Assembly: GCA_965644265.1 (NCBI GenBank)
Contig: OZ286470.1
Span: 29,264,001-29,328,000, forward strand
Length of the DNA: 64,000 nt
Direction of reading: 5' to 3'
Source of the DNA: Glycera tridactyla
Taxonomy: Eukaryota
The notes under the pieces were generated by a model. It did not search any database, was not told the origin of the DNA, and saw only the letters and a list, made by a program, of their open reading frames with translations. Position numbers and translations under genes: made by a program. Position 1 is the stretch's first letter. Each line of letters begins with the position of its first letter. Shown one piece after another: positions 2,821-45,885 of this stretch.

Positions 2821-3797
2821 CAAAAATACATGTTCTCACATATTGTCTTTGGTGTTGTAACTGTTCAAATGTATTCCATGAAAAAAGTGTCGCTTCAATC
2901 TTGATAGCGCTGGTGATGGATATGCCCGAACTTTTTTGAAATCGTGATGAAATTCTGAAGCCATTTCGAGGCTTTTTTCTGGAATACATAGTATGCGTGA
3001 GTGATTTTTTTTGTTTCTGATCATTATATCGTCATGTGCCCAGACAAGGGCAGGGGAGAGTGGGGGGAATCAGGGTCTATCCAGAGTGGGAAGTGTAAGC
3101 TGTCGAGCTCTGAATAGACAAGTTGCAGATATTAGAGTAGCAGGTCGCCTTGGTTCATACCTCTGAGTATATGAAGCACCTGTGTGTGATACTTCCCTAC
3201 TTTTCTCATAGCCTGCATACTTACCTGTGTTTCTGTGGTGGAATAAAGACAATAAATTCAAATCCAGCCATTCTGTCTCTTACTGCAACAGCAAATATCG
3301 GATCTCATAATTTCCCACACCTATGCTGTCCTGAGATATGTATGACCCAGCACTGGTGTGAGATTTAACCCAGAAGAGTATCAATTGATTGCAGTCATTG
3401 CAAATGGGATGTTCGTCATTTAAATATTCAAATGTATAATACATTAATATGAATGTGTCCCTCTGACTTAAGTGATTGATGCAGTTTCACACTGGAAAAA
3501 GGCAGTGTATGTCTCAACAGAATTCATGGGGAAACTCTCATGCGTTAATAAATTGCATTAAAGATGGAACACCATGAGTTGATTCTCGGATATTTGAACC
3601 CAATCTATCCCGGAATCTCCGCCAAGATGATGTTCGTAAAAGGACTGGTGTTGCTATGTAGTAGTAATAACAAGTCTATGGTGGACAGAAATGCGTTGTC
3701 TAAACGAGTGGGCCTTCTTGGTGCCAACCGGTGATGCAGCATACATGGCAATTGGCCACATATAACCCGACGCTATAGTGTCGTGTGTTTCCAAGAA

Positions 3798-4260
3798 GGG
3801 GAGTGATTAGCCGGTTCTAGCAAGCACAGTGGAGGTGTCAAACATTCGTTGGTTTGGACGGGGAGTGATCAGCCGGTTCTAGCAAGCACAGTGGAGGTGT
3901 CAAACATTCGTTGATATGGACGGGGAGTGATTAGCCGGTTCTAGCAAGCACAGTGGAGGTGTCAAACATTCGTTGGTATGGACGGGGAGTGATTAGCCGG
4001 TTCTAGCAAGCACAGTGGAGGTGTCAAACATTCATTGGTATGGACGGGGAGTGATTAGCCGGTTCTAGCAAGCACAGTGGAGGTGTCAAACATTCGTTGG
4101 TATGTACAGAAAGTGATTAGCAGGTTCTAGCAAGCACAGTGGAGGTGTCAAACATTCGTTGGTATGAAGGGGGAGTGCTTAGCCGGTTCTAGCAAGCAAA
4201 GTGGAGGTGTCAAACATTTGTTGGTATAAAGGGGGAGTGCTTAGCCAGTTTGTTGGTATG
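3798..4260 (+). repeat. 62-bp minisatellite, ~7 copies
   Basis: GAGTGATTAGCCGGTTCTAGCAAGCACAGTGGAGGTGTCAAACATTCGTTGGTATGGACGGG starts at 3801, 3863, 3925 and onward. Confidence 0.92.
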
Positions 4261-5528
4261 AACCTGTGTGGGAGAAAACTGAGCAGCCAGTTCCAACTAT
4301 GCAACCTCAGAAACAAGTGATGAACGTGATCTAGAGCTTCTCAGTCCTACCCATAGCCTGTATAACATGTTTGTACTGATGTATGTTGTTGCTGTTGGTT
4401 AGTTGATTCTGCATTAAAGTTACATCAGCACCATCTGGGCTATATTGTGACGCCCATGCAATGGGCATGATCGGGATTTTCAAAGACTTCTTTTTCTGGG
4501 TCCCAGAAAATTTGTCAAATTCACAGACACTCAAGGTGCCATTTCTGTGATTGCTGCGTTCTACAGGAATAAAGTGATGTGATCTGTTAAATGTTGTGAG
4601 GTTTATCTATGGTGCTTAGTGCCTAGTGCTACTGGTACCACCAACCAGAAAATAGTGTTGATCCTTGTCCCCTGCCATCTCTTCAGACAATATGCATGAG
4701 TCACTATGCAATTTCCAATACTTGCGTTGCTTTGAAGTAGCCGAGCCGGCTATATGAGAACATGTCTTGAGATACACTTGGATGATTTCAATATGCATTC
4801 AGTTTTCCATACAATATACTAGATTTCTCACAGAAAAGCTGTTGCTTGTCTTTTCATATACTGCTCACCTCATCAAGAAATAATGTATCTCTGCATGAAA
4901 GACGAATAATTTCTTGATGGTTTTTTCAAATGTATGGCATCACATTATATTTTGAGGTTTTCTAAAATATTTTCCAGATTTCCATCGGCACTGCTGTTTG
5001 TGAGAGTGATTTTAAGTATATAGTGGGTGGATTTTGAGAGGTCCTGTAATTAGAATTTGGGTAGCACTTGGTTACTCTATACAGCTGAATACGTGCTCAC
5101 TTCTACTATCTCTACATCAGTCCAGGGGCATTGCAAGTGGTTTTGGTAATTGCCTCATTAAAGTCATTTTGATCACATGGAACGTACCGTAGTTGCTCTT
5201 CTCCCTGCTTGGAATAGCTCGCAGCCAGTTGGGATTAGCACGCTTACGCATCAGCGCAGGAGGGAGGGTATTTCATGCGTGCGGTCTTTGAAGAAGAACC
5301 CACCAATTAATCTACTCATCAGAAGCATCCTGAAGTCGCGGATGGTACTATCTGGAAAATATGCCAACATGACGGTGATATAATTACCGTTATGACATCC
5401 AGTCAATTCACTTTTTTGGTTGCATCTGATTTTCTGGGATAATTCCTCAGAGGCGACGAGATCAATGTTTGTTCCTATGAGATCGTTTTGAATTCTCATT
5501 GCCTAGATAGAATATAACAGAAAAAGTA

Positions 5529-7310: not shown

Positions 7311-9665
7311 TTACTATCATCACTGTCGTTATTATTACTGTTATATTACTAGTACTGCAGTGAAGTAGACCTGGTGATGAAAAATGTATGCGAAGTAGGA
7401 GAAAGAAATGTCCATATGTTGGGTCATGTTACTGTTACTAACCCCCTCTACCTGGCGAATGGACCAGTGGTGATCACCACGCAACCAAGTTTTGAGTGGG
7501 GACTTGGTATACCAGCGTAAATGAAGATATGTCCATTATTATACCAACACTAGTCAAGGGTCAACTCGCAGCTTCACCGATTTTGCCCGCTAACAGAGAA
7601 GGCTCAGCCGTTCAGCTTCCTTTTACATATTTTCTCAGCTTTTTCCGAATTTTCTCAATTCACCCTCTCTTATTTGTGCCTACAAGTAGATATGGATACT
7701 TTTTCAACTCATATCTCCTCAATGTATATCTGACGTGATTGGTTTTCTCAAGAAGACCATAGGAATAAAAAGTACTGACACGAAGTCGCGACAGTGGATT
7801 CTGCAAATAAACTAGGCATCAAATCTGACTGTCCGACATGGATGCCAATAGTGCTTGGAACCTGGATGATTTAGGGGAGGCGGGGGAGGGGGGCTTCACA
7901 TTTAGAATGACAAGTCGAATGCACCTAGTAGTACCTCAGATAAAGTGGCAGGTCTTCACAAATACGCCATTCCATACTGTCAAACCTCTCACATGGCAAT
8001 AATATTTGCTGGCCTAGAGATTGAATAATGTATGCGGCATCGGGTAATTGATAGTCAATGGGGTACCGACTAACATTCACAGTGTGCTACAGGGACCTTT
8101 TTATAGTCCTGCCATTTGTCATATAGTTGATTGGGTTCACCCACACGGTTCCATGGGAGGTACAGATGATGATACATTCTCACATCGCATCCTGATCTAA
8201 CTGTACATTTCAAATTCTATTGGTATTCACAGACCCGTGACTGGTTGTCGTGGCAACAAAATTTGGTTAAACCATGATTTTATTCCACCAAGGCCTGGTG
8301 CACTTCCAATACAGCATCAGTTTGTCCATATTTGGTATTGATATATACGTCTAATCAAGCCTGACAATATGACATTGGCACAATTGTCAGTTAGGTGATA
8401 TATCTCTCGTAGAATCTGCTCATGTGGTGCAAAGAGATAAATTCAAGATTGAATTTCATACTTGAATTGTATTTCATAATTTCCGAGGCCAAATTAAAAA
8501 TTGTGCCAATAGAGTGATTGAGTGTAGTGATTGATGAATTGATTGGCAAATAATCTGACCCCCTGTAACATGAATTTGTGTTGCGCTAGTCCGAAATGAC
8601 CTGAAATCGAATTGAGCACTGATCTTCATCTAAACAAAGAACAAGCAGACAAAAATCTTTGGAGTAACATCACGAAAAGCATGCATAAACAAAATTCGAC
8701 CTTTTGCCCACTTGCCCGCATTGAAATTTCAGATTGGCTTGTGATAGATTGTGTGAATGATATACTTTGATGAGGAACTGTGATGATATTGGTAGTTTTC
8801 GTCAGTGTCTAAGTTCTTGTGAGCCTGATAAATTGAGGTTGTGGCAGAAGTGAAGGAGCCTTGGCAATTATTCATCATAAATCACACAAAAATGATTGAG
8901 TATCCATCAGGCCTGACAGGTAATTAGTTGCCTTGAACTGTCCCTTCTACCTTATATATTCTGATTGATGCGCTGACAATATGAAACAAATGACAAATAT
9001 TCGATTGTCTGATGCAGAATCACTGACAACACTAGGATCGCTCACAATGTAAGGTGCGGAGGTGTTGAGACATTGTCTCTCAGGAAATATTTTATATTGA
9101 ATGGGTATGACTTTTTGCAGGTCAGACATTCCTATCCCAGCCCCACCAACCAACCTATCTGGTCACTCTGATGTGGGTAAAAACAGTTTATTTTGCCAAT
9201 ATGAAGCTAATGACATATATTCGAGCGTCTCAAGTCAGGGCCTAATGCAGAATCACCAGGATCGCTTACCATATAGGATGTTCAGGTGTGGAAACTTTGC
9301 CTGTCAGAGAACTGTACATTACATGGGTGTGAATTTTTGCAGGTTAGACTTTCATATTCCAGCCCCCGCCAACCAACCTTTTTCGGTCACTATAATGTTG
9401 GTTTTAGTGCTTGTATTGATCGATCCGGTTTCAGTTGCATCAGGGTCTACCATCGTTCATCGACCATAGTCATCGGACTACCACATTACATGCCTGCCCA
9501 CCAACTTCCAGCTCTATTCAATTCAAAATGAATATGCAAAGGGATGCACGAGGGCCAGGGCCATCGGGCAAGCAGAGGAATGACCACGTCAGGAATGACT
9601 GTGGTGAAAAATCGTTCCGACAACAATGACTCAATGGACTACGAAAAGTCTATCTTCACTCCATG

Positions 9666-10885: not shown

Positions 10886-11888
10886 GATATTGCTCATCAT
10901 GTTGTACTTCTGATGAAAATTTAGACACCAGGATTCAAAGAGAATCTACTGAATTGGCTCTGATCATATTTTTCTGAAATTCATCAGAAATCTGAAGTCA
11001 GATCCAGGTCAGCAAGAATGACTGATCGAATGGATATTGTGAGATCTAAAGTGTAGGTGCTGGTGAGTATCTGATTCACAGACTGAATCAGGATGAATGA
11101 ATTGTCTTCCCATCAATAGAAATAAAAAAACGAACTTGTTTCCCTTAACGCTAACAGCAAATTCCAAATCCAGGTAAGCTTTTTCAATCACTCCAGAACA
11201 TAGCATAAATGGTAACTGGGCTTTTCTCTGTGATTGCATACGGTGCTACTTCTGTGGATCAAGTTATTTCTATATCAGTCATCCACAGGAAGATAGAAAA
11301 ATGGCATGATTGGTGTGTTAACTTCAGATTTTTTCTCGACAAGTAAGTGAAGTCCGCAGTAGAGATTTGAATAGTGGATTGAGATGTGTTGAGACACAAA
11401 TATAGCCATGGATGAAGAATAGGTTGCATATATCTATTTATTTCCCACCAAAGAATATATGACAAGGACTCCTCTCTTTCTAATTTTGAGGAATGTATAC
11501 AGTAACTTTTAAGGCATCTGTGGTATGGAGGTGATGAATTCATCACGGTGTTGCTTGGAACAAATGTGGATTTCTATAGTTTCCTATGACTTGAGTGGCA
11601 ACTATGGTCTGTTATCTTAGTATGGCTTTTGTATGCAGTCACGTTTGGTATAATATACCCTACTTGAAATGAAATGTTGAGTGGCCAGCATCAGGGAAAG
11701 CTGGAAGAGATGAGATTATTTTTCCAGCAGTCATCGGGACCTGCATTGGTTATGCATCAGTGTATTCAACGCATATTCAAGTGATGTATGATCAGTTTTC
11801 ACCGGCTTTGTCTATGGCATTGAATTATGCATCCATACCCAAAACTGCTGGCGGCACACTGTAAACCTGTATCTATTGCCTCACAAAG

Positions 11889-21310: not shown

Positions 21311-21500
21311 GGATCTATCTGTACCATTTCTCCCTCAAATTCTGCATTCCCCAGGCCGAATGCCTACTTGCGAACATAACAACAATATAAACTTTTCAAT
21401 TAGAGGATGTAACCTCCCCCCGACCTCCATTCCACCAGGTGGCTATGAATACCTAGCCACCAGAGGTCGGCCCGTCTGCTGTGTTTATCTGTGTATTTTT
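21311..21500 (+). repeat. DIRS left inverted terminal repeat (~190 bp)
   Basis: Reverse complement of 29623-29812 with about 4 mismatches. Confidence 0.9.
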
Positions 21501-22148
21501 CAACTTCGCGCCGTTGCAGCAAGTTGGGAGATACCCGGGCTCCGCGTAAAAGATACTTTTGCGTGCCTACGGCGCTTCAGAGGATACACATATTCGCATC
21601 ATATCATTCGGAATAGTATTGCTATCATTCGGAATATTGCGATTTAACCTCTGGAGTGTAATTGCGAATTTTGGTTGCCCGTAATTGTGTTATTGTACGG
21701 TACGTGTGTGGGATCACGGGGCGGACCCTCGAGGGCATCCGCCGTGCGCGGTATGTCACCGGGGCCGGAGCGGTCCGGTGTCCGTTGAATGTTGTCCAGT
21801 TTGAAACTACAATTAGGTGTCCCGGTATTATAGAGTGCGGGTGGTGTAACGGTTAGAGTTCGGGGCTTCCATCCTGGCGGCCGGGGTTCGCCTCCCCGCC
21901 TAGGAATAGTTTTGATAAGATTGCTATTGTTGTCCAAAATTTGACCGTAGTCCAATTGGAAACTACATGTTGTCCGATGTCCGGTAGCTCATCGCAATTC
22001 GCTAGTTTATCACATTTGTGTTAGTCAATAGATGTCCGGTGTCCGGTACTCATCGCTGCGGCCGGGATTTCTCTCGGCCGGTTGCACGGGAAATACAGTT
22101 TACGGGCGGCAGCGTGCAGCGCTCATCGCTAAATTCAACTGGGGAAGG

Positions 22149-22331
22149 TTCCCCGCCTAGAATTATTTTGTCGGATTGAAAATTCTTGTTTAGCCTGCAC
22201 CTTCGTAGCGTTGTCCGGATTCGTGCGTTCGCGGCATCAATAGTCGTAGCGTTGTTGGTAGCTTCCCCGCCTAGAATTATTTTGTCGGATTGAAATTCTT
22301 GTTTGGCCTCCGTCTTCGTAGCGTTGTCCGG
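22149..22331 (+). repeat. Two ~70-bp direct repeats in the DIRS 5' UTR (22149-22218, 22263-22331)
   Basis: TTCCCCGCCTAGAATTATTTTGTCGGATTGAAA...CTTCGTAGCGTTGTCCGG twice. Confidence 0.85.
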
Positions 22332-22889
22332 TGGCGAAACGGTAGCGTGCAGCGCACTCATCGCTGCGGCCGGGGTTCGATTCTCGGTCTGAATATCAAT
22401 TTTTACTCAGATTCGTAGCGTTGCTTTGTTGTTAAGTTTGACACTACCTGTCCGGTGTCCGGCGGCAACTAGATACAACAATGGTGTCTGTAGTACTACT
22501 TAACATCCCTTAGATGATATGGGGATGTATAGACCACTGATTTTTTCACTCCTCAGACAGTTCACAGTTGTTTGATTGTATTGCTTGTTGAAATGGTTCA
22601 CATTGTGGACCTGTGATTTTCATATCATTGTTTGTATTGTGGCTGAAATGACTCCTATTGAGTCGGTGTGAGCCAAAGGTTTGATGAAATGGCCGAAAGG
22701 TCTGTGATTTTCATACCCTTACCTGTCCTTGTTTGCTGTGCTGAGTGAGTTACATATATGAGCTACACATATGAGTTACACATTGATATACCCCGAGTGA
22801 ATTATACATACTGCCGGTGGACGTTCATGATTCCGTGAGTGATCCCACACTGCCAAACTATCAATTGCGTTATACTTTAATAAGTAAAT

Positions 22890-23168
22890 ATGTCTGGCCA
22901 AAAGCACGGGAATTGTGGCCACTTTATGGCGGCATGGGACAACCATGTGTTGTGCCCTTCGTGCAGAGAGTGTGGCAAGTCAGAGGACGTAGCCAAATAT
23001 GGCCAGAAAGTGTGCAATATTTGTGCTGTGTGGTCAATCGATTGCTGGGCTGCACACTATAAAAGACGGAAATTTGCGTCAAAAAAGAAGGCGACTTCTA
23101 AAAATGGCTCTTCAGTCACTTCTGAACCACCTAAAATGAAATCACTGTCAGTTGTTCTCCCGAAATAG
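22890..23168 (+). CDS. N-terminal Cys/His finger segment of the DIRS gag-like ORF, cut off by an in-frame TAG
   Basis: CGHF..NHVLCPSCRECG..VCNICAVW; same frame as 23172..25883, separated only by TAG 23166-23168 and one codon. Confidence 0.7.
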   Translation: MSGQKHGNCGHFMAAWDNHVLCPSCRECGKSEDVAKYGQKVCNICAVWSIDCWAAHYKRRKFASKKKATSKNGSSVTSEPPKMKSLSVVLPK

Positions 23169-23171
23169 TCT

Positions 23172-25883
23172 GTGGCAGAGGCTGATGTCAAATCTAAGGG
23201 ATCCAGTTGGGGTAGCATAGCCGACGAGATGTCACTTAGACCCAATTTACTGTCATCCATTAAGAGAAGGAAGCAACTGGCTATGCAGAATCTATCTGCA
23301 AAAGACTCTCATGTGTCTGGTCAATCTGACCAAGCAGGGGCGAGACCAGGGCCATCAGATTTGGATGGAGGTCTTGAGAATGAGTGTGCAAACAATTCTC
23401 AGTTGGGGGTTGGAAAAAAAGATTTGTACGAAGATGTGTCTGTTGTTGGGGACAATGAAGGAGATATTGGTGAATCACAAATTCAAACATCAGTCCCGGT
23501 CAATTTGCAATCAAACGAACAGATCAGTCAATCAATCAATTTACCTATTGACCAAATTGCCACTCAAGCCCCTCTTGATATGATGCAACTGCCATCTAGA
23601 CTTTATGGTTTTCTGTCCGGTCAACCATATTTCTATGATGACCCCAATGAGCAGTTGTTAGCCTATCCGTTAGGGGACATGGAAGGAGTCCCGGACAGGC
23701 AGGAGGAGGAAGAGAGAGAGAGGAGCCCCGATCCAGCAGGATCGATCATTCCTTCTCAGATCTATAGTAGAGAGGTTTCTACTACTCCTCAGGTAGCATT
23801 ACCGGTAGTGTCGCAGGTAGCGGCTAGTATACCTTTCACCGGTAGTGACAGAGGGGTCACAATGACAGCCCAAGTAGCGGTTCCTACTGTTCCAATAGGG
23901 GTTAGTCAGCAGGGTTCGGAGACTCCCGGGGATGTATCCAATCCGAATTATGTTCAATCAGGGGCTCTACACGATCAGTCTATGCATGTACCACAGATTC
24001 AAGTATTACAGAACCAGATTGATTCTAACCAGTCTCCGAATATTGCAGTAATGCCAGCAAGTCAACAGCAATTACATGCACAATTATTGTCTAGGATTGA
24101 TGATGAATTGCCACAGGAAGTCTTTGGCTCCCCAAGTTCCATTAGATCAGAGGCTCAAAGAAGGCTGAGTAATCTTACACAGGCTAGAATACAGATGGAA
24201 GGGAATTTGGAGCAGTTGAAAAAACTTATGGCATCTGCTCATTCTACAATGATGAGTACACCACAGGTTCCCTTGCAGACTGTCACTAGAGTACAACCAG
24301 CCATTAGTGTACATTCAGTTGTTCCACCACAACCACACAATACTCAACCTTCAGCCATGCCAAGACCACAAGTATCAGTCAGGATCTCACGTACGCCAAT
24401 GGTCACGAGATCATCTATCCCTCCTCAAACTGCCTTACATACACAGACAGTCAATCAGCCAGATATTATGGAACAAGGCTTGAAGAGAAAAGCTCAGGTA
24501 TCAAATGTCACTATCCCTCCTAAAGTGACTAGAAAATCAGCCATTCCTTGTACAGCATCAGTCCCTGGCTCCTATGCGAATATGGGCCCATCTCAAGTTA
24601 TGTATCAATCACAAATAGTAGATCTGAGATCACGTGATGAGAGGGAGAGAGATGCACAGATGGAGGCGATGAAGTCAAGAATGGAGAGAGTAGAGGATAA
24701 CTTGAGAGAGAGGAAGGAGAGAGATAGACAAAATGATTCAGATGATGACTCAGAGGGAGAGAAAGAGAAGCCGGAAGTCAGACGCAGGATGCGGAATTTC
24801 CGCAGATTTGCAGCCGATATTTTACCAACCTATATTCAGTCCCCTGAGGTGGTTTCTTGGAAAGGAACAAGTGCTTCCAAAACAGTGTTGAACACGTCTT
24901 TCGAGAATGAAAGAAGAGAGAGGGAGTTAGAGTTCTTGGCCGACTCAGCCTTACCCTTGTCGCCATTATTAATTTCTAGTCAAGAAATTCTGGATAAAAC
25001 CCTGCAAGGTCTGTTACCAAATGAGGAAGTACAGCCTATCACAACTGATTTTGAATCTTTTGAAGTTGGAAGGGCAGGGTTGTATGAGGCTAAGGCCAAA
25101 TATTTCAGATCCAATTTGCCTAAAATATATGGGTCAAATCCACAATCTTACCGTATTCGACAAACAGGCAATAAATCAAAAGATTATCTGGTAGAGGCTC
25201 CACAAATTGATAGGAACTATGACAAGTTTGGTTCAGCATCCAAATTTGAGCTTAAACCTACAAATGACGAGTTGACACTGAGAGAATCTTTGAAGACACT
25301 GAGCTACGCGGATTTTGCGTTAGCTGCAGGTCTCTCAGCTGCTGAACTATCAGATGCAGACATCCCAGGGGTGAAAGCTAAGGCAAAGGAGGCAATTTGG
25401 GTTGGCCTACAATCAGTGGAGCATGCCACTCAGTTGGTCCTTAAAGTGACCGGAAATATGGAGTTGGCAAGACGCACGGTCGCGTTAAGATCTACAAATT
25501 TTGATGAAGAGACCAAAATACAACTTAGATCTCTTCCTTTAGGCCAACAGGAACTGTTTGGTGGTAGGCTTAAGGATGCCTGTAAGAATGCTTCTGAATC
25601 GAAGAAAAGAGATAGAGAGCTTGCCTTTGATCCTAATACTCTCAAAACACAAGAAAAATCCAGTAGAGGAGGTTTTCAGAAGAGAGGTAGAGGTAATTCC
25701 AGAGGGAGAGGAGGCAGAGGCCAGAATTTCAGAGGCAGAGGTCGTGGTAGAGGTGGTCGTGGAGGTTATAACCAGAGAAGTGATGATCAGGGCAATCAGT
25801 CACAAAACACGCCTAAACCCAAACAAGAGTTCAAAGTAACTTTCAACAAGTTCAGGGGAAAAGGAAAGAAAAATCAGCCCTAG
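23172..25883 (+). CDS. DIRS gag-like ORF1 (main part)
   Basis: 903 codons; NMELARR..LRSLP..LFGGRL resembles the DIRS gag C-terminal domain; RGG-rich tail; position upstream of RT and YR. Confidence 0.8.
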   Translation: MAEADVKSKGSSWGSIADEMSLRPNLLSSIKRRKQLAMQNLSAKDSHVSGQSDQAGARPGPSDLDGGLENECANNSQLGVGKKDLYEDVSVVGDNEGDIGESQIQTSVPVNLQSNEQISQSINLPIDQIATQAPLDMMQLPSRLYGFLSGQPYFYDDPNEQLLAYPLGDMEGVPDRQEEEERERSPDPAGSIIPSQIYSREVSTTPQVALPVVSQVAASIPFTGSDRGVTMTAQVAVPTVPIGVSQQGSETPGDVSNPNYVQSGALHDQSMHVPQIQVLQNQIDSNQSPNIAVMPASQQQLHAQLLSRIDDELPQEVFGSPSSIRSEAQRRLSNLTQARIQMEGNLEQLKKLMASAHSTMMSTPQVPLQTVTRVQPAISVHSVVPPQPHNTQPSAMPRPQVSVRISRTPMVTRSSIPPQTALHTQTVNQPDIMEQGLKRKAQVSNVTIPPKVTRKSAIPCTASVPGSYANMGPSQVMYQSQIVDLRSRDERERDAQMEAMKSRMERVEDNLRERKERDRQNDSDDDSEGEKEKPEVRRRMRNFRRFAADILPTYIQSPEVVSWKGTSASKTVLNTSFENERRERELEFLADSALPLSPLLISSQEILDKTLQGLLPNEEVQPITTDFESFEVGRAGLYEAKAKYFRSNLPKIYGSNPQSYRIRQTGNKSKDYLVEAPQIDRNYDKFGSASKFELKPTNDELTLRESLKTLSYADFALAAGLSAAELSDADIPGVKAKAKEAIWVGLQSVEHATQLVLKVTGNMELARRTVALRSTNFDEETKIQLRSLPLGQQELFGGRLKDACKNASESKKRDRELAFDPNTLKTQEKSSRGGFQKRGRGNSRGRGGRGQNFRGRGRGRGGRGGYNQRSDDQGNQSQNTPKPKQEFKVTFNKFRGKGKKNQP

Positions 25884-27990
25884 GGACACGAGCGTCACCC
25901 CCTCACTCCCAGTAGAGGTAGGAGCACGTCTTTTACATTTTGTCGATCAATGGGAGGAACTAACAGACAACCGTTTTGTTTTGGAGATTATCAGGGAGGG
26001 CCTCTCGTTGGCTTTTCAGGGGCAGCCGCCACTATCCCCAGTCTTTATACCCTTCACTCTCCCAAAAGGTCGGGAGAAGAGGGAGGCGCTGCTCCTCGAG
26101 ATCAGGGGGATGCTGGAGAAGCGTGCCGTTATTCCGGTGCTCCAGCATCCCGACCCAGGTCCGGGGTTTTATTGCAACCTCTTCCTGGTCTCGAAGACAA
26201 CGGGGGGTTTCCGACCAGTGATAAATCTGAAGCCTCTGAACAAATTCATTCGAAATTCCAAATTCAAAATGGAAACCTCTATGTCTGTAGTCAAGGCAGT
26301 CTCTCTCCAAGACTGGTCAGTGTCGATCGACTTAAAGGACGCTTATTTCCACATACCAATAAATCAGAGATACCAGAAATTCTTGAGATTTGCGATTTCT
26401 CCAACGGAAGCCTTCCAGTTCAGGGCTCTTCCGTTTGGTCTGAGTTCAGCTCCAAGGATTTTCACAATGGTTCTGAGGGAGGTGGCGCATCATCTTCACA
26501 GTCTAGGCATCAAAGTGCATTTTTATCTAGACGACTGGCTGTTGAGGCACCAGAGTCCAGTCGTTCTATCACAACAGTTGGACTATGTCCGAGAGCTGGC
26601 GACCAAGCTGGGCTGGATTCTGAATCTTCAAAAATCAGATCTTATTCCCAGCCAGCAATTCACTTACCTGGGTATCGAGTTCGATACCCGGGTGGGAATG
26701 GTTCGTCCAGCACTCAGGAGAGTAGAACGGCTGGAGCTCTGTGTGAGGTTATTTCTCAGGAGACCTCGACAGCCAGTCAGGGCCATATTACGTCTTCTCG
26801 GCCATATGTCGAGTATGTCAGAATTCATCCACTTGGGAAGGCTCAATATGAGACCTTTACAAATGTTCCTCCTATCCAGGTGGAGACCCTTTGCGGATTC
26901 AATGGAAATCTTGTTAACTCTTCCTCAGGAAATACTTTCAAGTCTGGAATGGTGGATGAACAGGGAGATTATCTACGGGGGCATCCCTCTAGTAGAACCG
27001 CAGGTGACTATGACGTTGATGACAGACTCTTCTTTGAAGGGTCGGGGAGCTTGTCTAGTGATGGACGACTTCAGAGCTCAGACGTCGGGAGTTTGGCCAA
27101 CCACTCATGCCGGTCGATCGATCAATGCCCTAGAGTTAGAGGCAGTTTATTTGGCCCTGAAAGATTTCTCGGATCTTCTCCAGGAACAGATAGTATTAGT
27201 TCTTTCCGACAACTCGACCACAGTGTCATATATCAGGAAACAAGGGGGGACCCACTCAGCATTAATGTGTGGGATAGCTTGGAGGATCTATCAGTTTTCA
27301 GAAGAAATCAGTGTGAGATTGAGAATCAGGCACATTCCGGGAAAACAAAATGTGTTGGCGGATGCGCTGTCCAGAGCACACCCCATCCAAACAGAATGGT
27401 CACTGAACAAGGGAGTGTTCAATCAAGTCCTAGAGAAATACAATCTCTCACCCTCCATAGACCTGATGGCGACGTCAGAAAACAGCCAGCTTCCGGTATT
27501 CATATGTCCTTTCCCCGACCCACAAGCCTTGGCAGTGGATGCCCTGTCGGTGGACTGGACACAGTTCAACATAGCCTATGTTTACCCCCCTACATCTCTC
27601 TTGCGAGATGTGATAAACAAGATAAGAGGCCTGGAGATCACACTGATTTGTGTCGCCCCATGGTGGCCGAATCAGTCGTGGTTTCCAGACCTCTTAGAAC
27701 TCTCAATAGACCAGCCCCTGGAGCTCCCTGTGTCAGTTCATTTGATGACTCAGTTGGTGAAGAAGAGGCGAGTGCATCACTTCAGGCCTCAAATAATGAA
27801 CTTGACCGCGTGGTGTTTGTCAGGGAAGCCCTCTCTAGGAAGGGTTATTCAGCAAAGGCGTCTGAGCAGATCGCTCGGTCGGTACGAAGTTCTTCAGCCA
27901 GAATCTATGACAGTAGATGGAAGAAATGGGCCTTCTGGTGTAGGAAAAAAGGGGTGGATTGTTCAGACCCCTCTACACCAGAGCTGGTAG
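25840..27990 (+). CDS. DIRS RT - RNase H - methyltransferase-like ORF (open frame from 25840; first ATG at 26110)
   Basis: DLKDAYFHIPI, LPFGLSSAPRIF, FYLDDWLL (RT); TDSS, INALELEAV, SDNSTTV, HIPGKQNVLADALSR (RNase H); IDLMAT...AYVYPP (Dam-like MT). Confidence 0.93.
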   Translation, partial: LSTSSGEKERKISPRDTSVTPSLPVEVGARLLHFVDQWEELTDNRFVLEIIREGLSLAFQGQPPLSPVFIPFTLPKGREKREALLLEIRGMLEKRAVIPVLQHPDPGPGFYCNLFLVSKTTGGFRPVINLKPLNKFIRNSKFKMETSMSVVKAVSLQDWSVSIDLKDAYFHIPINQRYQKFLRFAISPTEAFQFRALPFGLSSAPRIFTMVLREVAHHLHSLGIKVHFYLDDWLLRHQSPVVLSQQLDYVRELATKLGWILNLQKSDLIPSQQFTYLGIEFDTRVGMVRPALRRVERLELCVRLFLRRPRQPVRAILRLLGHMSSMSEFIHLGRLNMRPLQMFLLSRWRPFADSMEILLTLPQEILSSLEWWMNREIIYGGIPLVEPQVTMTLMTDSSLKGRGACLVMDDFRAQTSGVWPTTHAGRSINALELEAVYLALKDFSDLLQEQIVLVLSDNSTTVSYIRKQGGTHSALMCGIAWRIYQFSEEISVRLRIRHIPGKQNVLADALSRAHPIQTEWSLNKGVFNQVLEKYNLSPSIDLMATSENSQLPVFICPFPDPQALAVDALSVDWTQFNIAYVYPPTSLLRDVINKIRGLEITLICVAPWWPNQSWFPDLLELSIDQPLELPVSVHLMTQLVKKRRVHHFRPQIMNLTAWCLSGKPSLGRVIQQRRLSRSLGRYEVLQPESMTVDGRNGPSGVGKKGWIVQTPLHQSW

Positions 27991-28871
27991 ACTTTCTTAT
28001 TGAATTGTTCGAGTCAGGCCTTTCTCCATCTACTGTCAAAGGTTACAGAAATGCTCTACAATCGGTGTTTGTAGTCACTGGCTGCTCTGTTCTTTCTGAA
28101 AGAGAGGTGAAGTCTTTGCTGAACGACCTCTTCCTGGAGAGACCAATTCTGCAAAACGTGGTGCCACAATGGAATCTATCTATAGTGTTAGAATTTCTGA
28201 AAAGTTATGTTTTCGAACCACTGGATAGTTGTGGAATTGTAAATTTAACGCGCAAAACAGTTTTCCTCATTACTCTAGCTTCAGGTAGAAGGAGAAGTGA
28301 GGTGCATGCTTTTTCTGGTGCAGAGGGAGCTGTTAGATTTTCTGCAGATCTATCAAATGTTCGTTTATATTCAGTTCCTGGCTTCTTGGCCAAAAATCAG
28401 AATCCAGCAGCCAAGCAACCTGAAGTTCTGATTCCTGCTATCCCTGTTGTTGATAATGTACAGAATGTCTTATGCCCAGTGAGAGCGTTACATGTATATT
28501 TGCGCAGAGTTGCCCCTTTTAGGGGAAGGAGAGTTCGACTGTTCTTGCCGCCAAATAAATCTACGAAAAAGGAAATAAGGGTTGACAGAGTTTCATCCTG
28601 GATCCAGCAGGTGGTGAGAATGTCTTATGAGCATGCAGATAGAGAGTCTGAATTGCCAGAGTCTATTACAGCTCATGAAACCAGAGCAATTTCCACATCG
28701 TGGAAATCATTTAATCAGAGTTGCTCTGTTGAAGACCTCATGAAGGCAGCTTTTTGGAAATCTGGCTCAACTTTTCCCACATTCTATTTACGTGATATGT
28801 GTGGACAGGCTCTCGACCTTTATTCTCTGGGGCCTGTGGTTGTAGCACAGTCAGTAGTAAATCCACGTTAG
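25950..28871 (+). CDS. DIRS tyrosine recombinase ORF (long N-terminal part overlaps the RT ORF)
   Basis: SGRRRSEV (Arg), HETR (HxxR), FWKS..TFPTFY (Trp/Tyr) catalytic residues; preceding helical binding domain YDSRWKKW..WC..STVKGYRNAL. Confidence 0.92.
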   Translation: MGGTNRQPFCFGDYQGGPLVGFSGAAATIPSLYTLHSPKRSGEEGGAAPRDQGDAGEACRYSGAPASRPRSGVLLQPLPGLEDNGGFPTSDKSEASEQIHSKFQIQNGNLYVCSQGSLSPRLVSVDRLKGRLFPHTNKSEIPEILEICDFSNGSLPVQGSSVWSEFSSKDFHNGSEGGGASSSQSRHQSAFLSRRLAVEAPESSRSITTVGLCPRAGDQAGLDSESSKIRSYSQPAIHLPGYRVRYPGGNGSSSTQESRTAGALCEVISQETSTASQGHITSSRPYVEYVRIHPLGKAQYETFTNVPPIQVETLCGFNGNLVNSSSGNTFKSGMVDEQGDYLRGHPSSRTAGDYDVDDRLFFEGSGSLSSDGRLQSSDVGSLANHSCRSIDQCPRVRGSLFGPERFLGSSPGTDSISSFRQLDHSVIYQETRGDPLSINVWDSLEDLSVFRRNQCEIENQAHSGKTKCVGGCAVQSTPHPNRMVTEQGSVQSSPREIQSLTLHRPDGDVRKQPASGIHMSFPRPTSLGSGCPVGGLDTVQHSLCLPPYISLARCDKQDKRPGDHTDLCRPMVAESVVVSRPLRTLNRPAPGAPCVSSFDDSVGEEEASASLQASNNELDRVVFVREALSRKGYSAKASEQIARSVRSSSARIYDSRWKKWAFWCRKKGVDCSDPSTPELVDFLIELFESGLSPSTVKGYRNALQSVFVVTGCSVLSEREVKSLLNDLFLERPILQNVVPQWNLSIVLEFLKSYVFEPLDSCGIVNLTRKTVFLITLASGRRRSEVHAFSGAEGAVRFSADLSNVRLYSVPGFLAKNQNPAAKQPEVLIPAIPVVDNVQNVLCPVRALHVYLRRVAPFRGRRVRLFLPPNKSTKKEIRVDRVSSWIQQVVRMSYEHADRESELPESITAHETRAISTSWKSFNQSCSVEDLMKAAFWKSGSTFPTFYLRDMCGQALDLYSLGPVVVAQSVVNPR

Positions 28872-29043
28872 GAGTCAGTGGATAGTTTTACTAGTCAAAT
28901 TAAGAATCGGGTTGATTCTATTTCTTATATTTATTAGGTCTTCACGGTGAGAGAAAGAGTAAGCTCTGAAACTATACAATAGTTGTAGATATTATAATAC
29001 ATGGATTGGAGACGTTACTCAGGGAAGTATACGATCCGTCCAT

Positions 29044-29432
29044 GAGACATGGAGTCTTTACTCTGGGTCTATAAATTATGTATAAAGAATACTCAGGTTT
29101 GAGTGCATTACCTATACAGGTATATAACCTTCCTGAGAGACATGGAGCTACTACTCTAGGTCTCTAATATTATTCATATACAAATACTCGGGTTTGAGTG
29201 CATTACCTAGGCAGGTATATAACCTTCCCGAGAGACATGGAGATACTACTCTGGGTCTATAATATTTATAATATACAAATACTCGGGTTTGAGTGCATTA
29301 CCTAGGCAGGTATATAACCTTCCCGAGAGACATGGAGCTACTACTCTGGGTCTATGATATTGTTAATATACAAATACTCGGGTTTGAGTGCATTACCTAG
29401 GCAGGTATATAACCTTCCCGAGAGACATGGAG
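29044..29432 (+). repeat. ~95-bp tandem repeat, 4 copies plus partial, in the DIRS 3' UTR
   Basis: GAGACATGGAG starts at 29044, 29137, 29232, 29327 and 29422. Confidence 0.92.
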
Positions 29433-29475
29433 TTTTTTGCTAGGGGGCTCTACACCCACCATCCATGTCAGATTC

Positions 29476-29569
29476 ATGCAGAATTTGAGGGAGAAATGGT
29501 ACAGATAGATCCCCCCCAGGTTTGTTTATTTAACCTGGGGATCTATACTTACCATTTCTCCCTCAAATT
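29476..29569 (+). repeat. DIRS internal complementary region (ICR)
   Basis: First half is the reverse complement of the left terminus (21311 onward); second half is the reverse complement of the right terminus (to 29843). Confidence 0.93.
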
Positions 29570-29622
29570 GGATGTTCCCTCCCGTCCGTCCCCGCTGTAG
29601 AGCGTTGGCGCTTGTTGAAGTA

Positions 29623-29843
29623 AAAAATACACAGATAAACACAGCAGACGGGCCGACCTCTGATGGCTAGGTATTCATAGCCACCTGGTGGAATGGAGGT
29701 CGGGGGGAGGTTACATCCTCTAATTGAAAAGTTTATATTGTTGTTATGTTCGCAAGTAGGCATTCGGCCTGGGGAATGCAGAATTTGAGGGAGAAATGGT
29801 AAGTATAGATCCCCAGGTTAAATAAACAAACCTGGGGGGATCT
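29623..29843 (+). repeat. DIRS right ITR (29623-29812) plus right extension (29813-29843)
   Basis: Complementary to the left ITR; extension CCAGGTTAAATAAACAAACCTGGGGGGATCT matches the ICR. Confidence 0.9.
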
Positions 29844-30336
29844 CATAATTTCCCACACCTATGCTGTCCTGAGATATGTATGACCCAGCACTGGTGTGAG
29901 ATTTAACCCAGAAGAGTATCAATTGATCGCAGTCATTGCAAATGGGATGTTCGTCATTTAAATGTTCAAATATATAATACATTAATATGAATGTGTCCCT
30001 CTGACTTAAGTGATTGATGCAGTTTCACACTGGAAAAAGGCAGTGTATGTCTCAACAGAATTCATGGGGAAACTCTCATGCGTTAATAAATTGCATTAAA
30101 GATGGAACACCATGAGTTGATTCTCGGATATTTGAACCCAATCTATCCCGGAATCTCCGCCAAGATGATGTTCGTAAAAGAACTGGTGTTGCTATGTAGT
30201 AGTAATAACAAGTCTATGGTGGACAGAAATGCGTTGTCTAAACGAGTGGGCCTTCTTGGTGCCAACCGGTGATGCAGCATACATGGCAATTGGCCACATA
30301 TAACCCGACGCTATAGTGTCGTGTGTTTCCAAGAAA

Positions 30337-30799
30337 GGGGAGTGATTAGCCGGTTCTAGCAAGCACAGTGGAGGTGTCAAACATTCGTTGGTTTGGACGG
30401 GGAGTGATTAGCCGGTTCTAGCAAGCACAGTGGAGGTGTCAAACATTCGTTGATATTGACGGGGAGTGATTAGCCGGTTCTAGCAAGCACAGTTGAGGTG
30501 TCAAACATCCGTTGGTATGGACGGGGAGTGATTAGCCAGTTCTAGCAAGCACAGTGGAGGTGTCAAACATTCATTGGTATGGACGGGGAGTGATTAGCCG
30601 GTTCTAGCAAGCACAGTGGAGGTGTCAAACATTCGTTGGTATGTACAGAAAGTGATTAGCAGGTTCTAGCAAGCACAGTGGAGGTGTCAAACATTCGTTG
30701 GTATGAAGGGGGAGTGCTTAGCCGGTTCTAGCAAGCAAAGTGGAGGTGTCAAACATTTGTTGGTATGAAGGGGGAGTGCTTAGCCAGTTTGTTGGTATG
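30337..30799 (+). repeat. 62-bp minisatellite, ~7 copies (unit A')
   Basis: Same unit as 3798-4260. Confidence 0.92.
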
Positions 30800-32067
30800 A
30801 ACCTGAGTGGGAGAAAACTGAGCAGCCAGTTCCAACTAAGCAACCTCAGAAACAAGTGATGAACGTGATCTAGAGCTTCTCAGTCCTACCCATAGCCTGT
30901 ATAACATGTTTGTACTGATGTATGTTGTTGCTGTTGGTTAGTTGATTCTGCATTAAAGTTACATCAGCACCATCTGGGCTATATTGTGACGCCCATGCAA
31001 TGGGCATGAGTGGGATTTTCAAAGACTTCTTTTTCTGGGTCCCAGAAAATTTGTCAAATTCACAGACACTCAAGGTGCCATTTCTGTGATTGCTGCGTTC
31101 TACAGGAATAAAGTGATGTGATCTGTTAAATGTTGTGAGGTTTATCTATGGTGCTTAGTGCCTAGTGCTACTGGTACCACCAACCAGAAAATAGTGTTGA
31201 TCCTTGTCCCCTGCCATCTCTTCAGACAATATGCATGAGTCACTATGCAATTTCCAATACTTGCGTTGCTTTGAAGTAGCCGAGCCGGCTATATGAGAAC
31301 ATGTCTTGAGATACACTTGGATGATTTCAATATGCATTCAGTTTTCCATACAATATACTAGATTTCTCACAGAAAAGCTGTTGCTTGTCTTTTCATATAT
31401 TGCTCACCTCATCAAGAAATAATGTATCTCTGCATGAAAGACGAATAATTTCTTGATGGATTTTTCAAATGTATGGCATCACATTATATTTTGAGGTTTT
31501 CTAAAATATTTTCCAGATTTCCATTGGCACTGCTGTTTGTGAGAGTGATTTTAAGTATATAGTGGGTGGATTTTGAGAGGTCCTGCAATTAGAATTTGGG
31601 TAGCACTTGGTTACTCTATACAGCTGAATACGTGCTCACTTCTACTATCTCTACATCAGTCCAGGGGCATTGCAAGTGGTTTTGGTAATTGCCTCATTAA
31701 AGTCATTTTGATCACATGGAACGTACCGTAGTTGCTCTTCTCCCTGCTTGGAATAGCTCGCAGCCAGTTGGGATTAGCACGCTTACGCATCAGCGCAGGA
31801 GGGAGGGTATTTCATGCGCGCGGTCTTTGAAGAAGAACCCACCAATTAATCTACTCATCAGAAGCATCCTGAAGTTGCGGATGGTACTATCTGGAAAATA
31901 TGCCAACATGAAGGTGATATAATTACCGTTATGACATCCAGTCAATTCGCTTTTTTGGTGGCATCTGATTTTCTGGGATAATTCCTCAGAGGCGACGAGA
32001 TCAATGTTTGTTCCTATGAGATCGTTTTGAATTCTCATTGCCTAGATAGAATATAACAGAAAAAGTA

Positions 32068-43229: not shown

Positions 43230-44209
43230 CAACGATACATATTCTCACATATTGTCTTTGGTGTTGTAACTGTTCAAATGTATTCCATGAAAAAGTGTCA
43301 CTTCAATCTTAATAGCGCTGGGGATGGATATGCCCGAACTCTTTTGAAAATCGTAATGAAATTCTGGAGCCATTTCGAGGCTTTTTTTTTCTGGAATACA
43401 TTGTATGCGTGAGTGATTTCATTTGTTTCTGATCATTATATCGTCATGTGCCCAGACAAGGGCAGGGTAGAGTGGGGGGAATCAGGGTCTATCCAGAGTG
43501 GGAAGTGTAGGCTGCCGAGCTCTGAATAGACAAGTTGCAGATATTAGAGTAGCAGGTCGCCTTGGTTCATACCTCTGAGTATATGAAGCACCTGTGTGTG
43601 ATACTTCCCTACTTTTCTCATAGCCTACATACTTACCTGTGTTTCTGTGGTGGAATAAAGACAATAAATCCATATTCACTCATTTTGTCTCTTACTGCAA
43701 CAGCAAATATCGGATGTCATAATTTCCAACACCTATGCTGTCCTGAGAAATATATAACCCAGCACTAGTGTGAGATGGAACCCAGAAGAGTATCAATTGG
43801 TCGCAGTTATTGCAAATGGGATGTTCGTCATTTAAAAATTCAAATATATAATACATTAATATGAATGTGTCCCTCTGACTTAAGTGATTGATGCAGTTTC
43901 ACACTGGAAAAAGGCACTGTATGTCTCAACAGATTTCATTGGGGAACTCTCATGCGTTGATAAATTGCATTAAAGATGGAACACCATGGGTTGATTCTCG
44001 GATATTTGAACCGAATCTATCCTGGGATCTCCGCCAAGATGATGTTCGTAAAGGGACTGGTGTTGCTATGAAGTAGTTATACAAGTCTATGTGGACAGAA
44101 ATGCGTTGTCTAAACGAGTGAACCTTGTTGGTGCCAACCGGTGTTGCAGCATACATGGCAATTGGCCACATATAACCCGACGCTATAGTGTCGTGTGTTT
44201 CCAAGAAAG

Positions 44210-44755
44210 GGAAGTGATTAGCCGGTTCTAGTAAGCACAGTTGGGGTGTCAAACATTCGTTGGTATGGACGGGGAGTGATTAGCCGGTTCTAGCAAGCAC
44301 AGTGGAGGTGTCAAACATTCGTTGATATGGACGGGGAGTGATTAGCCGGTTCTAGCAAGCACAGTGGAGGTGTCAATCATTTGTTGGTATGTACGGAAAG
44401 TGATTAGCCGGTTCTAGCAAGCACAGTGGAGGTGTCAAACATTCGTTGGTATGGACGGGGAGTGATTAGCCGGTTCTAGTAAGCACAGTTTGGGTGTCAA
44501 ACATTCGTTGGTATGGACGGGGAGTGATTAGCCGGTTCTAGCATGCACAGTGGAGGTGTCAATCATTTGTTGGTATGTACAGAAAGTGATTAGCCGGTTC
44601 TAGCAAGCACAGTGGAGGTGTCAAACATTCGTTGGTATGGACGGAGAGTGATTAGCCGGTTCTAGTAGGCACAGTTGGGGTGTCAAACATTCGTTGGTAT
44701 GGACGGGGAGTGATTAGCCGGTTCTAGCAAGCACAGTGGAGGTGTCAAACATTCA
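44210..44755 (+). repeat. 62-bp minisatellite, ~9 copies (unit A'')
   Basis: Same unit as 3798-4260 with variant subtypes. Confidence 0.92.
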
Positions 44756-45885
44756 AACCTCAGAAACGAGTGATGAACGTGATCTAGAGCTTCTCAGTCC
44801 TACCCATAGCCTGTATAACATATTTGTACTGATGTACGTTGTTGCTGTTGGTTAGTAGTTTCTCCATTAAAGTTACATCAGCTCCATCTGGGCTATATTG
44901 TGACGCCCATGCAATGGGCATGAGTGGGATTTTCAAAGACTTCTTTCTCTGGGTCCCAGAAAATTTGTGAAATTCACAGACACTCAAGGTGCCATTTCTG
45001 TGATTGCTGCGTTCTACAGGAATAAAGTGATGTGATCTGTTAAATGTTGTGAGGTTCATCTATGGTGCTTAGTGCCTAGTGCTACTGGTACCACCAACCA
45101 GAAAATAGTGTTGATCCTGGTCCCCTGCCATCTCTTCAGACAATATGCATGAGTCACTATGCAATTTCCAATACTTGTGTTGCTTTGAAGTAGCCGAGCA
45201 GGCTATATGAGAACACGTCTTGAGATACACTTGGATGATTTCAATATGCATTCGTTTTTTCTTACAATTTACTAGATTCCTCACACGAAAGCTGTTGCCT
45301 TTCTTTTGAGGTATTCTTAAATATTTTCCAGATTTCCATCGGCCCTGCTGTTTGTGAGAGTGTTTTTTAAGTAGATAGTGGGTGGATTTTGAGAGGTCCT
45401 GCAATTAGAATTTGGGTAGCACTTGGTTACTCTATACAGCTGAATACGTGCTCACTTCTACCATCTCTACATCAGTCCAGGGGCATTGCAAGTGGTTTCG
45501 GTAATTGCCTCATTAAAGTCATTTTGATCACATGGAACGTACCGTAGTTGCTCTTCTCCCCGCTTGGAATAGCTCGCAGCCAGTTGGGATTAGCGCGCTT
45601 ACGCATCAGCGCAGGAAGGAGAGTATTTCATGCACGCGGTCTTTGGAGAAGAACCCACCAATTAATCTACTCATCAGAAGCATCCTGAAGTCACGGATGG
45701 TACTATCTGGAAAACATGCCAACATGACGGTGATATGATTACCGTTATGACATCCAGTCAATTCGCTTTTTTGGTGGCATCTGATTTTCTGGGATAATTC
45801 CTCATAGAGGCGACGAGATCAATGTTTGTTCCTATGAGATCGTTTTGAATTCTCATTGCCTAGATAGAATATAACAGAAAAAGTA

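Follow-up and report, generated by a model that had tools for sequence, protein, structure and literature searches.

A DIRS1-like retrotransposon in Glycera tridactyla with a GGATCT hexamer at both ends, in its circle-junction template and at the empty paralogous target site

An 8527-bp insert in the genome of Glycera tridactyla is a DIRS1-like retrotransposon in the features tested (inverted terminal repeats, or ITRs; internal complementary region, or ICR; right extension; reverse transcriptase/RNase H; tyrosine recombinase), and it carries at both of its ends a GGATCT hexamer that its own ICR encodes and that an empty copy of the insertion site holds once. On balance, we favour the explanation that the element inserted by recombination of a circle junction with the host site, that only a short core (likely ATCT) had to be identical, and that the family would be part of a wider group of DIRS elements with RGATYT junctions. 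That the copy is recently inserted and largely intact belongs to the same account and is held with the same moderate confidence. The mechanism is already published and is not new: the Goodwin-Poulter junction-target model, restated in PMC7192593 and PMC3266345, has DIRS elements integrate by recombination of the circle junction with an identical genomic sequence, without target-site duplication (PMC3266345). The unusual point is the shared stretch itself, both in its length of 6 bp and in its composition, which includes G and C. As this is a single insertion, it is not established that the family seeks GGATCT.

The window, that is, the whole 64,000-nt stretch analysed, contains a tandemly duplicated host segment. 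The spacing of the repeats is 18011 bp before position 21311 and ~26539 bp after it, showing that one unit (A') holds ~8.5 kb that is absent from unit A. The sites compared are as follows:

3300..3305, plus strand: empty target site in the paralogous unit A, AATATC GGATCT CATAA, with the hexamer once
43712..43717, plus strand: the same site in the third unit, A'', reading GGATGT and empty; flanks ~95% identical to A and A'
21311..21316, plus strand: left GGATCT copy, the first bases of the left terminus (from the sequence and the alignment of the end with the ICR)
29838..29843, plus strand: right GGATCT copy, followed by host CATAA (from the sequence, the alignment of the end with the ICR, and the empty-site comparison)

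From 21305 onward the left junction in A' reads AATATC GGATCT ATCTGTACC..., and around 29829-29848 the right junction reads ...AACCTGGGG GGATCT CATAA. The original prediction had described these same sites, namely the empty hexamer in A, the filled site with GGATCT at both ends, and the empty GGATGT variant in A'', and all of them were found as described. When 21316 is joined to 29844, A' becomes colinear with unit A, with identity at 1190 of 1199 flank positions and at 100% of positions up to 60 bp on either side of the site; because the empty reference comes from a paralogue of 99.2% identity and not from an allele, the pre-insertion sequence of A' is one that we infer. Outside GGATCT, no additional base is common to both sides of the junction in the comparison of A' with A, and the host side shows neither deletion nor filler. 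Across the window GGATCT occurs no more often than expected (38 sites vs 38.6), and with no requirement for identity six shared junction bases would be seen in ~1 in 4096 cases per register, placing the match far beyond chance. Each of the three units also carries a 62-bp tandem array ~370 bp downstream of the insertion site (3672-4343, 30211-30882 and 44083-44878).

The ends of the element and the region complementary to them have the following parts:

21311..21507, plus strand: left ITR, 97.5% complementary to 29617-29812; its first 37 nt are the complement of the ICR
29617..29812, plus strand: right ITR; its last bases (29807-29812) are AGATCC, mirroring GGATCT at the left
29813..29837, plus strand: right extension, 25 nt, complementary to the ICR alone, besides itself; with 29811-29812 it forms a hairpin with a 9-bp stem and a 9-nt loop (29811-29837)
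29476..29569, minus strand: ICR, in which 29476-29512 pairs with the left end and 29507-29569 with the right end
29044..29432, plus strand: 95-bp tandem repeat, 4.1 copies with 91% matches, between the recombinase stop and the ICR

Aligned against each other (21311-21507 vs 29812-29617), the ITR arms give 198 aligned positions at 97.5%, and we report them as 197-nt inverted repeats. Read along the minus strand from 29569 to 29476, the ICR runs through the right end, GGATCT and the left end. Its match to the left end is perfect (37/37; 21311-21347 with 29512-29476) and its match to the right end nearly so (62/63, 98.4%; 29507-29569 with 29843-29782), and the two matches overlap by exactly the 6 bp of 29507-29512, the circle-junction hexamer. 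The proposal that the ICR encodes a junction around GGATCT is thus borne out, apart from a one-G mismatch in a run of Gs. The G run before ATCT differs among the copies: it has 7 Gs in the ICR, 6 at the right end, 4 in the mirrored copy in the right ITR and 2 in the target, the G/C homopolymers by the hexamer lying at 29501-29507 (ICR), 29834-29839 (right end) and 29810-29814 (mirror). A circle and a target with these runs would together give one G more than the two junctions hold, so that the present ICR and the two junctions do not form an exact reciprocal set; homopolymer slippage or an assembly error could account for the discrepancy. Since the ICR and both inverted repeats carry the hexamer and the target had it too, its two flanking copies are best read as the result of recombination through shared identity, and the claim of a shared core rather than a random target-site duplication stands.

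The inverted repeat includes the left GGATCT, which is mirrored at 29807-29812 because the junction region is palindromic. The right extension and the hexamer (29813-29843) are self-complementary and continue the palindrome, so that the whole junction region forms one long palindrome around the 9-nt loop; the region's folding energy is -32.9 kcal/mol, at a z-score of -10 relative to shuffled sequences. The centre of this palindrome was considered as the crossover point and rejected, as the break, located by comparison with the empty site, falls at the hexamer, 10-15 nt right of the loop. A search by eye for inverted binding arms around the hexamer found nothing convincing in the circle and 5/7 matches in the target, which fall in A/T-rich sequence and were not counted.

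The coding part of the element consists of overlapping and successive frames:

22890..23168, plus strand: Cys-rich open frame of 92 codons, with TAG at 23166-23168, in frame with the gag-like ORF
23172..25883, plus strand: ORF of 903 codons, gag-like by position; no Pfam match; TAG at 25881-25883
25981..27990, plus strand: reverse transcriptase/RNase H ORF; RVT_1 with E 1.9e-22; C-terminal part unmatched in Pfam
25950..28871, plus strand: ORF of 973 codons, in a different frame from the reverse transcriptase ORF that it overlaps; the tyrosine recombinase takes up its final ~350 codons (27810-28868)

Matches of the reverse transcriptase ORF to RNase H families in Pfam were weak (E 0.005) and below the curated cut-off. 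The recombinase had only weak matches to SAM-like N-domains in Pfam, while in an alignment of 21 sequences (the element and 20 homologues) the residues R161, H289, R292 and Y326 were invariant. A profile built from this alignment found Cre as its best match among solved structures, though weakly (E 3.5e-4). A methyltransferase-like domain is the criterion that separates DIRS1-like elements from Ngaro; no Pfam match to such a domain was seen after RNase H (27300-27987), and the translation contains a DLxA...PP...PxW-type pattern, which may be a methyltransferase-like motif. The ITRs, right extension, ICR, reverse transcriptase and recombinase together confirm the earlier identification as a DIRS element. 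The perfect match of the left end to the ICR and the open state of the main ORFs indicate that the element is young. One frame is nearly continuously open from 22890 to 28871, running through the Cys-rich piece, a TAG, the gag-like ORF, a second TAG and the 973-codon ORF; this second in-frame TAG (25881-25883) stands directly before GGA, and no later stop follows until the end of the 973-codon ORF. The 973-codon ORF overlaps the reverse transcriptase ORF by ~2 kb, and the latter lies in the +1 frame without overlapping gag.

Set against DIRS1-like elements and the Cappello/Goodwin-Poulter integration model (PMC3266345, PMC7192593), this element is alike in its ITRs, whose outer part is divergent, in its right extension, in an ICR that is complementary to both ends and whose two halves overlap at the circle junction, in its gag-like, reverse transcriptase/RNase H and tyrosine recombinase ORFs and the long overlap of ORFs, and in a junction motif that stands at each end and a single time in the target. 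It differs in the junction itself. The two halves of the ICR in DIRS elements overlap on a 3-bp circular junction, and NTT, mostly ATT, is found at both ends in 23 of 28 annotated elements (PMC3266345); the Xenopus families have TTT (PMC9210276). The overlap of the present copy is 6 bp with G and C, in agreement with the original prediction that the core is longer and less T-rich than known DIRS termini. Unlike in described DIRS1-like elements, the extension is itself a hairpin, which makes the whole junction one long palindrome. Finally, the element is 8.5 kb long vs 4.0-6.3 kb for the 28 annotated elements (3974 to 6283 bp; PMC3266345), an unusual size accounted for by the 95-bp repeat, a 1.4-kb leader (21508-22889) and a long gag.

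Other systems offer partial parallels. Cryptons, which are tyrosine-recombinase DNA transposons, have 4-6-bp terminal direct repeats that are taken as recombination substrates (PMC3212892), and such short repeats are interpreted as identity of circle and target rather than duplication (PMC3212892, PMC13465315), as here; unlike the present element, they lack reverse transcriptase, ITRs and ICR, and the proposal for them is movement as excised DNA. The classical tyrosine recombinase sites, Cre/loxP among them, are alike in that exchange takes place across a region that must match (spacers of 6-8 bp are typical of tyrosine recombinase sites; PMC3212892), and Cre is the best solved match of the recombinase profile; the likeness is limited by the weakness of that match and by the lack of evident inverted binding arms around the target hexamer.

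A 26-mer from the termini, used to look for a second copy of the family, gave only the three expected matches in the window, and an exact scan of metagenome contigs with the terminal 26-mer gave none. Protein searches reached at best 45% identity with the long ORF and 54% (55% by tblastn) with the recombinase alone, which shows that the family and the genome are absent from the protein collection. The relatives with an RGATYT or GGATC junction motif have recombinases 40-55% identical to that of this element and the same terminal architecture; their hosts and families differ from those of the present element. Related elements were obtained as single copies. For the 80 metagenome loci, the contig in most cases stops at the element's edge or within it, and junction information came only from L050 and L028. 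The overlap of L050 is TTT, its contig ending at the right terminus. L028, readable at its left end only, has the junction AAGATCT and begins at ATCT, the flank differing from the ICR just before. Another locus, L001, was dropped as a copy without a recognisable right end. Some DIRS recombinases (P0123, P0127, P0144 and P0150) are annotated in MAGs of clam symbionts (Candidatus Thiodiazotropha, Sedimenticola); these are almost certainly host (bivalve) contigs binned with bacteria and, taken with matches in Mytilus and scallop, they suggest that the lineage is mainly molluscan.

Seven relatives lie on long contigs with both ends, and their overlaps were measured as for this element: AGATTT (6 bp) in L088, ATTTT (5) in L004 and TTTT (4) in L085, both from Mytilus edulis, ATTT (4) in L087, TTTA (4) in L091, about 2 bp in L002, and 0 to 3 bp in L086, depending on the reading of one G/A mismatch. 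L087 and L088 are closely related and have nearly the same junction, yet overlap by 4 vs 6 bp, so that the obligatory core can look longer than it is when judged from one copy. The original prediction had gone on to suggest a family-wide preference for BglII/BamHI-like hexamers; with one insertion of this family in hand, overlaps of ~0 to 6 bp among relatives, and L028 starting at ATCT, that part was not supported. A looser motif does recur: in a survey of ICR palindromes, RGATYT directly follows the extension hairpin in 8 of 52 ICRs, as GGATCT in this element, AGATCT in L009, L028 and L063, AGATTT in L087, L088 and L065, and GGATTT in L014. Two relatives stand closest to this element. In L045 (54% recombinase identity), the nearest one whose junction could be read, the aligned position has GGATCA and the extension hairpin has diverged; that GGATC is kept despite this divergence suggests constraint on those bases. 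GGTTAG occupies the aligned position in L089 (55% recombinase identity). In both L045 and L089 the G run on one side and a CTGTA...CCAT block on the other are conserved.

According to the explanation we favour, the cDNA ends would be joined on the ICR to give a circle with the junction ...CCTGGGG-GGATCT-ATCTGTACC..., as inferred from the published model. Strand exchange by the element's Cre-like recombinase would then link this junction to a host site with, by chance, the same bases, so that each end of the insert keeps one copy of the shared stretch and nothing is truly duplicated. The obligatory identity would be short, most likely ATCT, which may be the positional counterpart of the usual ATT(T) core in other DIRS families, and the two additional G matches would be fortuitous or merely favoured. 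The variable overlaps among relatives, the pair L087 and L088, the start of L028 at ATCT, the RGATYT motif in 8 of 52 ICRs, and a 5-16% chance of the extra matches all argue for a short core: by our own calculation with equal base frequencies, at least 3 further matches beyond a 3-base core have a chance of ~0.05, and at least 2 beyond a 4-base core ~0.16. Against it, 2 of the 3 well-defined insertions in the RGATYT group (this element and L088) share all six bases vs ~1/16 expected per site, which hints at a preference for longer identity. Taken to its limit, such a preference would mean that strand exchange in the lineage spans a full 6 bp in which element and target have to match, as with Cre or XerCD, and that the family inserts only at GGATCT. 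Cre-type enzymes exchange strands across 6 bp, Cre is the best solved relative of the recombinase profile, the only insertion available shows exact 6-bp identity, and GGATC is retained at the junction of L045; the lengths of Crypton repeats and of typical recombinase spacers (PMC3212892) would fit as well. We nevertheless regard an obligatory hexamer as possible but doubtful, because n is 1, the related L087 and L088 differ in overlap, L028 begins inside the motif at ATCT, the close relative L089 has GGTTAG in place of the hexamer, and the count of Gs does not fit an exact reciprocal exchange. If it were true, the literature's '3-bp junction' would represent no more than the conserved portion of a crossover region of greater length, and this would be a retrotransposon family whose target is a defined hexamer.

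The recombinase might also have played no part, a linear cDNA with hexamer ends having been joined at a chromosomal break by host microhomology-mediated repair. Six bases of microhomology are within the range used by this type of repair. Furthermore, most intermediates of Dictyostelium DIRS-1 are linear single-stranded cDNA, and amplification of its circle junction did not succeed (PMC7192593). Both junctions, however, are base-exact with respect to the junction encoded by the ICR, and the host carries no deletion or filler; the element keeps an intact recombinase ORF with all catalytic residues, and the ICR is essential for DIRS-1 retrotransposition (PMC7192593). We consider such an origin unlikely. 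Less probable still, to the point that we give it very little weight, is that the element was already there before the units were duplicated and was precisely lost from A (and A''), or that the A' copy is an assembly artefact. The empty site being a paralogue rather than an allele leaves room for this, but with two empty units vs one filled, a single insertion is more parsimonious than two precise losses, the element appears young from its left end and its open frames, and the junction anatomy is that which a real integration gives. One insertion after the A/A' duplication would thus be the most economical history of these sequences.

For the integration model, which is left unchanged, the base-exact comparison of filled site, empty site and ICR provides useful natural support, because the specificity of DIRS recombinases is experimentally unexamined and no circle junction has been amplified, according to PMC7192593. 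Together, junction and target hexamer make a concrete substrate for a biochemical test. The main new element, the longer G/C-containing core, comes from one event.

Several smaller features of the termini were seen in the related elements. The sequence GTAAGTA (often GGTAAGTAT, and resembling a 5' splice donor) is present in the right ITR's end in 26 of 52 of them and at 29796-29804 in the window; it is probably the conserved block at the boundary between the divergent and conserved parts of the ITR in PMC3266345. Left and right termini are normally unequal, but in two related copies one terminus mirrors the other: in L003 both are right-type (4985-5199 and 11369-11584), and in L028 both are left-type (1436-1468 and 7802-7834). 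Finally, four copies from two related families have a G after ...CATATAAA at their right end, in place of the A in the complement of the ICR (L002:11599, L003:11578, L091:11641 and L086:11706), and in each this G would still pair with the ICR strand as G-T.
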